The notes under the pieces are model-generated. The model worked only from the letters and a program-made list of their open reading frames with translations. It did no database searches and was not told where the DNA came from. 64,000 bases of DNA from Rebecca billardiae RCC1528 (taxonomy: Eukaryota; Protista; Haptophyta): assembly GCA_965240325.2 (NCBI GenBank), contig OZ251248.1:372001-436000 (forward strand), given 5' to 3'. Position 1 is the first letter of the stretch. Each line of letters opens with the position of its first letter. Shown here one piece after another: positions 17,490 to 61,063 of the stretch. A program made the position numbers and the translations under genes.

Positions 17490-18268
17490 CTAAATAGGCC
17501 GCCGCCCGCCGTCTCTGACGACTCTGAGTCTGAGTCTGAGGCCGTCGGCGTCGGCGGCCCGGTCGCGGACTGCGGCGGGCGCGCCGGCCCGCCTGCCTGG
17601 GGCAGCCTGGGCGCCGGCGCCCGCTGCATGTATATATATATATATATGTAACCGCACCGCCACCGGCACTCGTCCGGGCGTCCCGTCGCCTGACGGCATT
17701 CATCTGAACTGCTGTGCGGACGATTGTACGACTGGCATGCGCGCACTCGATGTGCCTGCTGTGAAGCTCTTCGTCAGACAGCCCGTCAGTTGACGATACC
17801 GACTCATACCGCCGGGGCCACCGGCCGCGAGTTCACGGCGGTGTCGGCGCACTTCGTCTTCGTGTCCAGTCTGACAACCGCTCTCCGCATTCCCGTTGCG
17901 AAGTCGACCCACGACACATGTGGGCGGCGCCAAGGTGACGGCGCACGCGCCTGCGGCCCGCAGTCGGCGGTGCCGAAGCCGAGCTTTGCTCGCCACGCAC
18001 GGCCGTCTGTCTGTCACCGATCCACGCCAGCACCAGGGGCTCCGAGGTGCCGACAATGGTGGTCGTGCCGACGCCATCGGAGTGGCGCGGGCCGAACCGG
18101 CGGCCGCAGAAGCGAAAACCTCGTCACAAATCGTCTGGAAAACGGGAAACGTTCATCAAAGAACTCTGGGCGCAGGACTGCTGCAGCCCTCTGCGTGGGC
18201 GAGGAGCGGTCGTCGGCCAGCGGGGCGACGCACGCGCCAGCCGGTGCGCTGTGGACAAGCTGGCCGGC
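17490..18268 (+). repeat. Conserved spacer/upstream module of the tandem unit
   Basis: The block ATAGGCCGCCGCCCGCCGTCTCTGAC recurs near 27554, 31844, 36717, 51983 and 56703. The block CATTCATCTGAACTGCTGTGCGGACG...CGTCAGACAGCCCG recurs near 27850, 32041, 36911, 49495, 52215 and 58745. Confidence 0.9.
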
Positions 18269-19330
18269 ATGGTCGGCGTGAAGAACCAGAAGCGCGCAGT
18301 GTGCGAACATGTTGGCTGCACCAAGGTGCCTTCGTTTGGCATGCCGGGCGACGCGCGCGCCAGCCGGTGCGCTGCGCACAAGCTGGCCGGCATGGTTGAC
18401 GTGAAGAATAGCAGTTGTGCTCACACCGGCTGCACCAAGGGGCCTTCGTTTGGCATGCCGGGCGACGCGCGCGCCAGCCGGTGCGCTACGCACAAGCTGG
18501 CCGGCATGGTCGACCTGAAGAACCCCAGGTGTGATCGCACGGGCTGCACCACGCGGCCTTCGTTCGGCATGCCGGGCGACGCGCGCGCCAGCCGGTGTGC
18601 TACGCACAAGCTGGGTGGCATGGTCGACCTGAAGAGCCCCAAGTGTAATCACACAGGCTGCAACACGCGGCCTTCGTTCGGCATGCCGGGCGACGCGCGC
18701 GCCAGCCGGTGCGCTACGCACAAGCTGGCCGGCATGGTCGACGTGGTGAGCCGCAGGTGTGATCACGCGGGCTGCACCACGCGCCCTTTGTGTGGCATGC
18801 CGGGCGACGCGCGCGCCAGCCGGTGCGCTACGCACAAGCTGGCCGGCATGGTCGACGTGGTGAGCCGCAGGTGTGATCACGCGGGCTGCACCACGCGCCC
18901 TTTGTGTGGCATGCCGGGTGACGCACGTGCCAGCCGGTGCGCTGCGCATAAGCTGGCCGGCATGGTCGACGTGGTGAGCCGCAAGTGTGATCACGCAGGC
19001 TGCACCAAGGTGCCTTCGTTCGGCATGCCGGGCGACGCGCGCGCCAGCCGGTGCGCTACGCACAAGCTGGCTGCCATGAAGCGCCTTGCGAGTGGTGCGC
19101 ACATTCGGCACAAGCGTGGGCTGGAGCACGGCTCGAGCACCACAGCGTCCAGCGCCGCCAAGCGACAGCGGACGCGCACCAGCAGCACAGGCACGACCTC
19201 TGTCGCCGCAGCAGCCGCAGCGCAGCCGCGGCCGCGGTCGCAGCTGCCGCCGGTGGTCAAGGCCCGCCTTGCATCGACACCACTATCGCATTCTGCACGG
19301 CCTGTGGTGATGGCTAGGTGGGTCAACTGA
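18269..19330 (+). CDS. EsV-1-7 cysteine-rich repeat protein, copy 1 (7 full repeats)
   Basis: 38-aa repeat CxxxGCxxxPxFGMPGDARASRCxxHKLxGMVDxxxxx matches the EsV-1-7 motif pattern (C-x4-C...C-x2-H-K..GMV). Start is uncertain; the frame is open from 18047. Confidence 0.85.
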   Translation: MVGVKNQKRAVCEHVGCTKVPSFGMPGDARASRCAAHKLAGMVDVKNSSCAHTGCTKGPSFGMPGDARASRCATHKLAGMVDLKNPRCDRTGCTTRPSFGMPGDARASRCATHKLGGMVDLKSPKCNHTGCNTRPSFGMPGDARASRCATHKLAGMVDVVSRRCDHAGCTTRPLCGMPGDARASRCATHKLAGMVDVVSRRCDHAGCTTRPLCGMPGDARASRCAAHKLAGMVDVVSRKCDHAGCTKVPSFGMPGDARASRCATHKLAAMKRLASGAHIRHKRGLEHGSSTTASSAAKRQRTRTSSTGTTSVAAAAAAQPRPRSQLPPVVKARLASTPLSHSARPVVMARWVN

Positions 19331-58550: not shown

Positions 58551-59896
58551 GTTGGCGGTGGCAGCTCAGGCGAACTGTTACACATGTCAGACTGAGACAG
58601 CAGCCGACGGAGGGGGCGCCGCGGGCCCCGAACTACGTTCGTTCTACGGAAAAAGACCGCGGAACGCGGTCATGTATCGGATAAATCATAAATGATGTCG
58701 TCAACCGCCACCGGCACTCGTCCGGGCGTCCCGTCGTCTGACGTCATTCATCATCTGAACTGCTGTGCGGACGATTGTACGACTGGCATGCGCGCACTCG
58801 ATGTGCCTGCTGTGAAGCTCTTCGTCAGACAGCCCGTCAGTTGACGATACCGACTCATACCGCCGGGGGCGCGGGGCCACCGGCCGCGAGTTCACGGCGG
58901 TGTCGGCGCACTTCGTCTTCGTATCCAGTCTGACAACCGCTCTCCATTCCCGTTGCGAAGTCGACCCACGACACATGTGGGCGGCGCCAAGGTGACGGCG
59001 CCCGCGCCTGCGGCCCGCAGTCGGCGGTGCCGAAGCCGAGCTTTGCTCGCCACGCACGGCTGTCTGTCTGTCACCGATCCACGCGCAGCACGTCGGCCGG
59101 CCTGCCTCATCGCGTGAGGCAGCAAGGCGGTGGAACGCCGAGGGATGCGAGCGCTTCCGCGAGCGCTCCCGCGAGCGTGATGTGCGCGAGAGCTCACCAG
59201 AAGCGGTCGAGAGGCGAGGGGCTCCGAGGTGCCGACAATGGTGGTCGTGCCGACGCCATCGAGTGGCGCGGGCGGAACCGGCGGCCGGAGGTACGGAAAC
59301 CTCACAGATCGACGAAATTGCTCTGTCACTCACTGTTCCATGGGTTTGCATCGTCATCGTGGTCCGGGCGGTGAGCACGGGTTTTCCCGATGGCGGCCGA
59401 GGTTCATGCATGGTCGCCGCCGCCATCGGCCAGCCCGCTGCGCCGCGCGCCGGCTGCTTCGTCGCGAGTGCTCGACGGAGCGCGCTGCTATTACGCGCGC
59501 CGGTGCACCGGCGCGGCGCGTGCCGTCGCCAACGGCGCGGCGCGCTCGTGCTCCGCCCGAGGAGGGGGCCAAAAACTTGGTCACCTCCCACTCTGTTGAC
59601 TTGTGTGGCTCCTGTGAGGATCCACACGCGTCACCCGGCCTCTCCCACCCCTCTGTTGGGTCTGTGTGCGCACGCGGGAATAGCCCGCGTGCCGGGGCCA
59701 TACCTCCCACTGGGAGGGCGTACACTTAAAGAGCGTAGCTTATGGCAACTGATGGTCTTAACTGACTGTGGGCAAACGTCCGGAAAACGGGAAACGTTCA
59801 TCAAAGAAACTCTGGGCGCAGGACTGCTGCAGCCCTCCGCCTGGCCAGCGGGGCGACGCACGCGCCAGCCGGTGCGCTGTGGACAAGCTGGCCGGC

Positions 59897-61063
59897 ATGG
59901 TCGACGTGGGGCACCCCAAGTGTGAGCACGTGGGCTGCACCAAGCGGCCTTCGTTCGGCTTACCCGGCGACGCGCGCGCCAGCTGGTGCGCTACGCACAA
60001 GCTGGCCGGCATGGTCGACGTGGTGAAGCGCAAGTGTGATCACACAGGCTGCACCATGCAGCCTTCGTTCGGCATGCCGGGCGACGCACGCGCCAGCCGG
60101 TGCGCTGCGCACAAGCTGGCCGGCATGGTCGACCTGAAGCACCCCAAGTGTGAGCACGCGAGCTGCACCAAGCGGCCTTCGTTCGGCATGCCGGGCGACG
60201 CGCGCGCCAGCCGGTGCGCTGTGCACAAGCTGACCGGCATGGTCGACGTGTTGAAGCGCAAGTGTGATCACACAGGCTGCACCAAGCGGCCTTCGTTCGG
60301 CATGCCGGGCGACGCGCGCGCCAGCCGGTGCGCTGTGCACAAGCTGACCGGCATGGTCGACGTGTTGAAGCGCAAGTGTGATCACACAGGCTGCACCAAG
60401 CGGCCTTCGTTCGGCATGCCGGGCGACGCGCGCGCCAGCCGGTGCGCTACGCACAAGCTGGCCGGCATGGTCGACCTGAAGCACCCCAAGTGTGATCACG
60501 CAGGCTGCACCAAGGTGCCTTTGTTCGGCATGCCGGGCGACGCGCGCGCCAGCCGGTGCGCTACGCACAAGCTGGCCGGCATGGTCGACGTGGTGAGCCG
60601 CAAGTGTGATCACGCCCGCTGCACCAAGCGGCCTTCGTTCGGCATGCCGGGCGGCGCGCGCGCCAGCCGGTGCGCTGCGCACAAGCTGGCCGGCATGGTC
60701 GACCTGAAGAGCCGCAAGTGTGATCACACAGGCTGCACCAAGGGGCCTTCGTTCGGCATGCCGGGCGACGCGCGCGCCAGCCGGTGCGCTGTGCACAAGC
60801 TGGCCGGCATGAAGCGCCTCAGGAGTGGTGCGCACATTCGGCACAAGCGTGGCCTGGAGCAAGGCTCGAGCACCACAGCGTCGAGCGCCGCCAAGCGACA
60901 GCGGACGCACACCAGCAGCACAGGCACGACCTCTGACGCCGCAGCAGCCGCAGCGCAGCCGCGGCCGCGGTCGCAGCTGCCGCCGGTGGTCAAGGCCCGC
61001 GTTGCATCGACGCCACTACCGCATTCTGCACGGCCTGTGGTGATGGCTAGGCGGGTCAACTGA
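59897..61063 (+). CDS. EsV-1-7 repeat protein, copy 6 (8 repeats)
   Basis: Same repeat and tail. The frame is open from 59768. Confidence 0.85.
   Translation: MVDVGHPKCEHVGCTKRPSFGLPGDARASWCATHKLAGMVDVVKRKCDHTGCTMQPSFGMPGDARASRCAAHKLAGMVDLKHPKCEHASCTKRPSFGMPGDARASRCAVHKLTGMVDVLKRKCDHTGCTKRPSFGMPGDARASRCAVHKLTGMVDVLKRKCDHTGCTKRPSFGMPGDARASRCATHKLAGMVDLKHPKCDHAGCTKVPLFGMPGDARASRCATHKLAGMVDVVSRKCDHARCTKRPSFGMPGGARASRCAAHKLAGMVDLKSRKCDHTGCTKGPSFGMPGDARASRCAVHKLAGMKRLRSGAHIRHKRGLEQGSSTTASSAAKRQRTHTSSTGTTSDAAAAAAQPRPRSQLPPVVKARVASTPLPHSARPVVMARRVN

Follow-up and report, generated by a model that had tools for sequence, protein, structure and literature searches.

The EsV-1-7 domain, which is said to have been named in 2017, defines one of the largest gene-family expansions of the brown algae; the family includes a developmental regulator, and its biochemical function is unsolved. 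The motif, the large and tandemly clustered brown-algal families that carry it and their link to viruses have been published (10.1101/2024.02.19.579948; 10.64898/2026.04.27.720984; PMC12993054). It has been suggested that the motif may be a novel type of zinc finger (10.1101/2024.02.19.579948), and the EsV-1-7 genes of Ectocarpus are stated to carry no further Pfam domain (10.64898/2026.04.27.720984). We have analyzed a stretch of 64,000 nucleotides of the haptophyte Rebecca billardiae RCC1528 (assembly GCA_965240325.2, contig OZ251248.1, positions 372,001 to 436,000), referred to as the window, that contains six genes of this type. They share with the brown-algal family the unit of ~38 amino acids with its C-x4-C-x16-C-x2-H pattern repeated in tandem, the arrangement of the genes in tandem clusters (10.1101/2024.02.19.579948) and the link to giant viruses; the host is different, a very GC-rich haptophyte. 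An earlier reading of the window made from the letters alone (the sequence-only reading) had implied a family of brown algae and the Ectocarpus virus, and its presence in a haptophyte genome shows that range to have been drawn too narrowly.

Our analysis leads us to think it probable that this is a tandem cluster of EsV-1-7 zinc-module genes with a scaffold kept by selection, homogenized by gene conversion, the products of which probably bind nucleic acid, and DNA in particular. The genes are called G1 to G6 in window order and are as follows.

18047 to 19330, plus strand: G1, 7-unit EsV-1-7 array gene (units 18302-19099; PF19114 E 8.4e-97)
29412 to 31176, plus strand: G2, 13-unit array in two frames (units 29463-30945)
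32550 to 33800, plus strand: G3, 7-unit array, closest paralogue of G1 (units 32772-33569; PF19114 E 5.9e-96)
50127 to 51083, plus strand: G4, 6-unit array (units 50169-50852; PF19114 E 8.5e-82)
54573 to 55964, plus strand: G5, 9-unit array (units 54708-55733; PF19114 E 7.3e-115)
59768 to 61063, plus strand: G6, 8-unit array (units 59921-60832; PF19114 E 8.2e-117)

A motif scan of the six frames of the window finds 50 in-register units of 114 nt (38 amino acids), all on the plus strand and distributed 7/13/7/6/9/8 over G1 to G6. Tandem Repeats Finder places six 114-nt arrays at 18314-19078, 29475-30924, 32784-33548, 50099-50831, 54720-55712 and 59851-60811, with 6.4-12.7 copies, 87-90% matches, 0% indels and scores of 1116-2184. 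The six co-oriented arrays and their unit counts are therefore just as the sequence-only reading gave them, and its observation, counts and list of variants hold, well outside what chance would give. Every variant that it listed is present, i.e. TKV, TKG, TKR, TKQ, TTR, NTR, TMR and TMQ after the second cysteine, S, L or Y after the proline, A, T or V before the histidine, and the variants of the linker. The family assignment also holds, as all six products match the Pfam model PF19114 (EsV_1_7_cys) with E values of 8.5e-82 to 8.2e-117 and 269-381 bits, over 6-9 stretches each, where the threshold of membership is the gathering score of 25 bits. Within the ligand pattern C-x4-C-x16-C-x2-H, C1 and C6 are invariant in 50/50 units; C23 and H26 are invariant in 49/49 units that are readable there, the remainder of G2 unit 5 being lost to a frameshift. 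In both ligand pattern and Pfam score the window genes are new members of the known EsV-1-7 family.

The arrays are preceded by leaders of 40-85 amino acids that are weakly conserved among the copies. G1 alone has an in-frame ATG upstream of its array. In G2 to G6 the first ATG lies inside a half-unit (...KLAGMV...) immediately before unit 1, and the starts assigned there by the open reading frame (ORF) program are GTG. Since an ATG stands ahead of the array in G1 only, the true starts and the intronless status of the genes are unproven. In G2 the G run at 29963-29966 is one nucleotide too long, which puts unit 5 out of frame and generates two overlapping ORFs; this could be a homopolymer sequencing error. 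The leader of G4 contains a stop and a change of frame, and its customary first unit is absent, while the upstream region of G6 departs from those of the other copies starting ~130 nt before the half-unit. Thus of the 'six intronless genes' of the sequence-only reading the six arrays stand, while the split G2, the broken leader of G4 and the single upstream ATG do not fit the description. G1 ends in a basic, low-complexity tail of 85 amino acids; the tails of the window genes are basic and rich in Ser, Thr and Ala, with KRQR-type stretches that may serve as a nuclear localization signal (NLS). An assembly artefact was considered as the source of the copies and rejected, because flanks, transposon insertions and unit order are particular to each copy.

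Where do the units vary? We aligned the 50 units by codon, setting aside those codons of G2 unit 5 that the frameshift affects and, in the last unit of each gene, the end that has diverged. At 17 of the 38 positions the amino acid never changes, and these include C1, C6, C23 and H26. The 14 variable positions (2, 4, 5, 7, 8, 9, 11, 25, 29 and 34-38) correspond to the C-x4-C knuckle together with the three residues beyond it, the residue after the proline, the residue before the histidine, position 29 and the five-residue linker. The fixed scaffold with few variable positions had been recognized from the letters; positions 2, 4 and 5 inside the C-x4-C, and position 29, had been overlooked. The variants at these hot spots are mainly polar or basic residues at intermediate frequency, and there is strong linkage between the variable positions in the unit alignment. 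On re-phasing the units, the linker and the knuckle of the following unit become one contiguous variable stretch of ~16 residues flanked by invariant blocks. There are 29 combinations of linker plus knuckle in 43 junctions, several of which recur.

Synonymous diversity (piS) is 0.133 per site in the 14 variable codons and 0.115 per site in the 24 framework codons, reported as equal, yet nonsynonymous diversity (piN) is 0.283 in the former and 0.019 in the latter. This gives a piN/piS of 2.1 for the variable class, which was picked after inspecting the data, against 0.16 for the framework, and the relative nonsynonymous excess expected by the sequence-only reading is present. The most recently separated units behave in the same manner: in 17 reciprocal-best pairs the nonsynonymous and synonymous differences (Nd/Sd) are 25/4 at variable and 4/7 at framework codons (Fisher p 0.0037). 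We can also count each distinct allele once. The framework then has 12 nonsynonymous and 14 synonymous alleles where 78% nonsynonymous are expected (p 4e-4), so that nonsynonymous alleles are depleted, while the hot spots have 34 and 9 where 73% are expected (p 0.26). Given that the framework alleles are depleted and the hot-spot alleles fit neutrality by count, constraint is shown, and positive selection at the hot spots is not demonstrated. The framework, comprising the four metal ligands, GMPGDARASRC and HKLxGMVD, is under purifying selection, whereas the 14 hot-spot codons are at least unconstrained and carry variants of intermediate frequency.

The cluster contains its own neutral control, in the form of pieces of a neighboring gene that were duplicated along with the arrays.

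14504 to 17271, plus strand: cysteinyl-tRNA synthetase (CysRS) gene of several exons, judged genuine (Pfam tRNA-synt_1e on three exon-like ORF pieces; homologues)
19331-20128, 31177-31974, 33801-34682, 51084-52351, 55965-56828 and 61064-61612, plus strand: CysRS 3′-end pseudo-fragments (self-comparison), all indel-ridden

The homologues of the CysRS gene are eukaryotic, the best named ones being those of Emiliania huxleyi and Chrysochromulina tobinii (~45% identity). Self-BLAST shows that the duplicated unit opens with the 3′ end of this gene, starting at position 16634 (source sequence 16634-17827). Each fragment begins at the first base past the stop codon of the preceding array gene, and a (GCC)n tract at that stop codon holds the duplication junction. 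The amplified unit thus consists of the CysRS 3′ end with the 3′ untranslated region, an (AT)n tract, an upstream region of ~0.5 kb and the array gene; it is ~2.7-3 kb long and is repeated head to tail. Among seven 760-nt copies of the CysRS fragment the divergence is 4-15%, and there are 27 distinct indel blocks, of which 20 have a length that is not a multiple of three. By contrast, the arrays plus tails, ~7.2 kb in total, contain one single indel of 1 nt. The fragments are dead copies, and are therefore an internal neutral yardstick for the arrays. A chimeric gene, with the array spliced to the downstream CysRS sequence, was considered and rejected, because the fragments contain many indels and do not keep to one frame, with the homology beginning past the stop.

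The units themselves turn over within this set of genes. G1 and G3 have flanks that are 95-97% identical, and their units 1, 6 and 7 are identical over 114/114 nt; units 3-5 have been replaced. More generally, an interior unit is most similar to one that has another ordinal position or belongs to another gene, while first and last units match the first and last units of other genes. G5 contains an internal duplication of three units (342 nt), and its units 5 and 8 are identical. A unit-by-unit comparison confirms that the order differs in every gene, and that units have been reshuffled between genes, both as read from the letters. Thus the array genes behave like a coding minisatellite: unequal exchange and conversion duplicate units, remove them and move them about, both inside a gene and from one gene to another. 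The non-repeat tail of 85 codons differs by 3.3% between copies. As its divergence is low at synonymous and nonsynonymous sites alike, this is ascribed to gene conversion and not to purifying selection on the tail.

What might such arrays do? Their closest relatives provide the best indication. The two closest, with 56-58% identity, both have a C-terminal domain with a predicted nuclease fold. A C-terminal domain of ~190 amino acids with the motif RPD...E-x-D-E-x-x-H...NPD is present in 67-74 of the 120 best relatives. In an alignment of 40 sequences of the domain R82, D84, E97, D99, E100, H103, R114, R131, N133 and D135 are invariant, and a four-cysteine ribbon precedes them. Pfam does not recognize the domain, even at E 0.1, and a profile search of PDB sequences gave only chance matches to zinc ribbons and RING domains (E >= 0.1). 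We therefore turn to its predicted structure. The AlphaFold 2 (AF2) model has a mean predicted local distance difference test (pLDDT) of 86.5 and a predicted TM-score (pTM) of 0.80. All its Foldseek matches are PD-(D/E)xK nucleases, with weak E values of 5e-4 to 0.1, and include the R2 endonuclease domain, Hjc, McrC, Bax1 and restriction enzymes. In VIA-align the best match is the catalytic domain of I-Bth0305I (95/97 residues) with Z 8.1, in the range around 8 where the tool warns of common arrangements, followed by Vsr with Z 6.6. Because the matches are uniform in class and the acidic and histidine motif is invariant, and not because of any one match, the domain is best assigned as a predicted PD-(D/E)xK nuclease fold of Vsr/EDxHD type.

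How general is this fusion? An exhaustive profile search with the domain found 1,962 cluster representatives at E <= 1e-30. Amongst the 143 best new representatives the motif is kept in 143/143, and 3-13 EsV-type units precede the domain in 117/143; across the fusion family the number of units ranges from 0 to 13. The sources appear to be viral, ~70 of the 120 best relatives being of giant-virus type. The gene neighborhoods on three contigs carrying relatives are compact and giant-virus-like, one with topoisomerase II, RNase III and DUF5755, the other two with the small subunit of ribonucleotide reductase together with an SNF2/RING helicase. Nucleocytoviricota make up 98-100% of the Atlas neighbors, which also point weakly to DUF559, a Vsr-like family. 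The two closest relatives are syntenic orthologues on contigs of 66% GC (L002:3452-4777 and L003:1864-3063). From their last unit onwards the two proteins are 100% identical up to the C terminus, and their arrays differ by gain or loss of units. In both contigs the array-nuclease gene is directly downstream of the gene for the ribonucleotide reductase small subunit, a neighborhood that is a classic site of free-standing homing endonucleases in phages.

The viral arrays resemble those of the window in where they vary. Comparing variability within the array position by position, we find a correlation between the window and 17 relatives that each have five or more canonical units (rho 0.55, p 3e-4), and positions 9, 36, 7, 35 and 11 lead the shared variable positions. 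The relatives also vary in the loop 13-22 and at position 24, both of which are fixed in the window units. The C-x4-C-x16-C-x2-H columns are invariant in 81 four-unit segments of the relatives.

On this basis we propose the following scheme. A unit of ~2.7-3 kb running from the CysRS 3′ end to the array gene was amplified head to tail, with mobile elements inserting afterwards, and the 114-nt units are duplicated, lost and exchanged, the end units staying and the interior units being shuffled. Each protein would be a string of small zinc modules with a basic, NLS-like tail, located in the nucleus. The arrays would most likely bind nucleic acid, probably DNA, because thousands of relatives from giant viruses, among them the closest, place similar arrays before a nuclease-fold domain of Vsr/EDxHD type; the variable residues of knuckle and linker would set the target. 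The viral arrangement would then be a targeting module plus a cutter. The algal genes would comprise the targeting part only, and would therefore bind without cutting, as regulators or blockers. Two steps here are ones that we infer: that arrays bind DNA because their relatives are fused to a nuclease, which is an argument by analogy, and that the hot spots are the residues of specificity. The nucleic-acid recognition suggested by the sequence-only reading thus gains indirect support from the nuclease-type fusions of the relatives.

A number of observations weigh against this scheme. No near-identical protein or transcript for the window genes was found among 5.8 billion proteins, the best match having 58% identity. 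An ATG ahead of the array is missing from five of the six copies, the frame of G2 is shifted and the leader of G4 is broken; moreover, long open frames occur on both strands in such GC-rich DNA, where openness alone is little evidence. The tail has a pN/pS of ~1.0, and the allele counts at the hot spots are consistent with neutrality or relaxed constraint. G1 to G6 have no nuclease domain, making the inference from the fusions one of analogy: a profile search for the domain in the six-frame translation of the window matches only its first 20-40 positions, a tract that resembles EsV units. Vsr-like folds are also found in RNA-binding RAP/FASTK proteins (PMC11879112), which were among the VIA-align matches, and the target could be RNA. 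Lastly, the model of the array resembles no solved DNA-binding fold. The AF2 model of a four-unit segment (pLDDT 89, pTM 0.55), which is metal-free, is an extended string with short beta bridges only and no helices. Foldseek found nothing in the PDB below E 3 for this model, and a wide VIA-align search found no match with Z >= 2.

Several other explanations can be set beside a nucleic-acid-binding cluster with a selected scaffold. The first is that of the sequence-only reading, whereby the arrays form a repertoire for recognition that diversifies adaptively and follows a per-unit code, like the repeat-variable di-residues (RVDs) of transcription activator-like effectors (TALEs) or the fingers of PRDM9 and KRAB proteins, directed for example at giant viruses or transposons; shuffling of units would supply new specificities on which selection acts. 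The frequency-weighted piN/piS of the 14 hot-spot codons, 2.1-2.3 in the whole set as well as in the most recent unit pairs, is what such a repertoire would give, as are the mostly polar or basic variants at intermediate frequency and a separate unit order in every gene. The viral arrays vary at corresponding positions, and the relatives are nuclease fusions. But the hot-spot class was chosen post hoc and its allele counts fit neutrality (p 0.26), the differences between the closest units could be conversion tracts moving old variants rather than new mutations, the ~29 linked combinations of linker and knuckle point to a limited set of unit types and not to free combination, and the tail evolves neutrally. 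We therefore regard an adaptive repertoire as unlikely. A bolder version would make the EsV-1-7 arrays a hitherto undescribed class of modular, sequence-specific readers of DNA that aim a Vsr-type nuclease in the viruses, with a rapidly shuffled, nuclease-free repertoire in the alga that occupies or marks its matching sites, for example to block the viral cutters or to silence invaders, by a per-unit code residing in knuckle and linker. This we consider just as doubtful; were it true, the viral proteins would be natural 'zinc-module nucleases' behaving like homing endonucleases.

Alternatively the arrays might not read DNA at all, being protein-protein scaffolds or RNA binders, regulators in the manner of IMM (IMMEDIATE UPRIGHT) of Ectocarpus, in which the variable residues are a tolerant surface. 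The orthologues of IMM are marked by an N-terminal domain of their own ahead of five EsV-1-7 repeats. IMM, the only genetically studied member of the family, is a developmental regulator without shown DNA binding (10.1101/2024.02.19.579948; PMC12993054), Ectocarpus EsV-1-7 proteins bear no Pfam domain besides this one (10.64898/2026.04.27.720984), no solved DNA-binding domain resembles the array model, and the Vsr-like folds include the RNA-binding RAP/FASTK proteins (PMC11879112). On the other hand, the domain of the relatives keeps the invariant acidic and histidine residues typical of active PD-(D/E)xK and Vsr-type nucleases, and in structure it comes closest to a DNA homing endonuclease. 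The tail has basic, NLS-like stretches, and the concentration of variation in a contiguous stretch of knuckle plus linker suits a specificity surface. A function of this kind seems to us rather improbable.

The history of the locus bears on a third possibility. Several mobile elements lie between the copies.

20166 to 27538, minus strand: Ty1/copia retrotransposon between G1 and G2 (RVT_2, zf-CCHC; 721-bp long terminal repeats (LTRs), 100% identical)
37394 to 48707, plus strand: second Ty1/copia element, 11.3 kb (RVT_2/zf-CCHC search; 566-bp LTRs, 99.8% identical)

The identity of its LTRs indicates that the first of these inserted very recently, and it may still be active. The second splits the upstream region of G4, pieces of which are found at 36661-37022 and from 49416, and it carries an extra ORF of 660 amino acids (37958-39940) without a Pfam match. 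In G2 the upstream region has been replaced by an insertion of low GC (~55%) with inverted repeats at 27540-29320, probably a non-autonomous transposon; it contains GTACA-rich tandem repeats of 11 and 20 nt (28444-28713) and an inverted repeat (28400-28754 versus 28909-29244). The copia and other elements therefore inserted between the copies after the amplification. Perfect (AT)n tracts of 130-150 bp are found at 17359-17489, 51829-51977 and 63722-63857, with further (AT)n at 36661-36708 and 63210-63281; these tracts recur at one fixed place of the duplication unit, within a genome of 70-80% GC. Ten ORFs in the spacers between the copies have no Pfam match. At positions 1-14000 ORFs of 1000-2000 codons are open on both strands, again with no Pfam match; the GC content there is 77-83%, so the long ORFs are no evidence of genes. 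The GC content at third codon positions (GC3) is 0.79-0.84 in the array genes and 0.91-0.96 in the neighboring CysRS gene, a difference that is compatible with a foreign origin of the arrays without being proof of one.

The least probable of the alternatives is that the genes are decaying, nuclease-less remnants of a selfish array-nuclease family derived from giant viruses, passively amplified by segmental duplication in a region rich in transposons and owing their apparent order to gene conversion: the frameshift in G2, the broken G4 leader, the five copies of six without an upstream ATG, the tail with pN/pS ~1 and 8-10 private amino-acid changes in G1, the two young copia elements and the other insertion inside the cluster, the lower GC3, and a tail that has diverged less (3.3%) than the flanks have (4-15%), both at synonymous and at nonsynonymous sites, as expected from conversion, would all suit such relics, yet the framework has a piN/piS of 0.16 overall and remains constrained in the most recent unit pairs, the arrays and tails are nearly free of the indels that abound in the CysRS fragments duplicated with them, and the four metal ligands are kept across the units.

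We thus return to a cluster of nucleic-acid-binding zinc-module genes, and to its place amongst known systems. The combination of a rigid scaffold, few variable positions and viral nuclease-type fusions leads to a concrete hypothesis, that the arrays set the specificity for a nucleic-acid target. In the parts of the EsV-1-7 literature accessible to us, which concern mostly brown algae, we found no description of haptophyte copies, hot-spot variation or nuclease fusions. The window units also differ from the brown-algal family in being near-identical in DNA (87-90%), with the variation confined to 14 codons. New at this locus are the control provided by the CysRS fragments, the duplication junction, the transposon history and the caveat that allele counts place on selection. 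Amongst the Nucleocytoviricota fusions (EsV-1-7 array, CCCC zinc ribbon and nuclease-fold domain; e.g. P0012, P0022 and P0005) the arrays are 40-58% identical to those of the window, and the closest share the loop ...GD.(R/Q)ASRCAAHKL.GM... with its units. They differ in the basic low-complexity tail that closes the window genes, and in loop 13-22, which varies in the viruses and is invariant in the window. For the C-terminal domain of the relatives, and for that domain only, the closest systems are I-Bth0305I/EDxHD and Vsr, its best structural matches, with which the invariant E-x-D-E-x-x-H is shared; unlike I-Bth0305I, the N-terminal targeting part of the relatives is an EsV-1-7 array, and there is no match to solved structures at the level of sequence.

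Two modular DNA-reading systems invite comparison with the arrays themselves. TALE repeats are 33-35 amino acids long and consist of two helices without metal, with a variable di-residue at positions 12 and 13. The TALE effectors of Xanthomonas and Ralstonia are similar in unit length (34 compared with 38 amino acids), in having few and fixed variable positions, in a unit order specific to each gene and in evolving by repeat recombination. This is an analogy only, with no homology: none of the six products has a TAL-effector match in Pfam, the window model is free of helices with four Cys/His ligands per unit, and there are ~14 variable positions rather than one di-residue. The C2H2 finger has the pattern C-x2-4-C-x12-H-x3-5-H and a beta-beta-alpha fold. 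Here the window differs in its C-x4-C-x16-C-x2-H ligands, the lack of a helix in the model and the absence of KRAB, SET or other effector domains, and no product has a zf-C2H2 match in Pfam. Nevertheless the C2H2 minisatellite arrays of PRDM9 and the KRAB-ZNF proteins are also small tandem modules stabilized by metal (as predicted here for the window units) and encoded by homogeneous repeat DNA, evolving by unequal crossing-over and conversion with a constrained framework and variable residues that are putative contacts. If there is no code, the locus is still a clear coding-minisatellite gene family with a co-duplicated pseudogene fragment as its internal neutral control. If a per-unit code were to prove true, the EsV-1-7 array would be a third natural modular scaffold for reading DNA, beside C2H2 fingers and TALEs.

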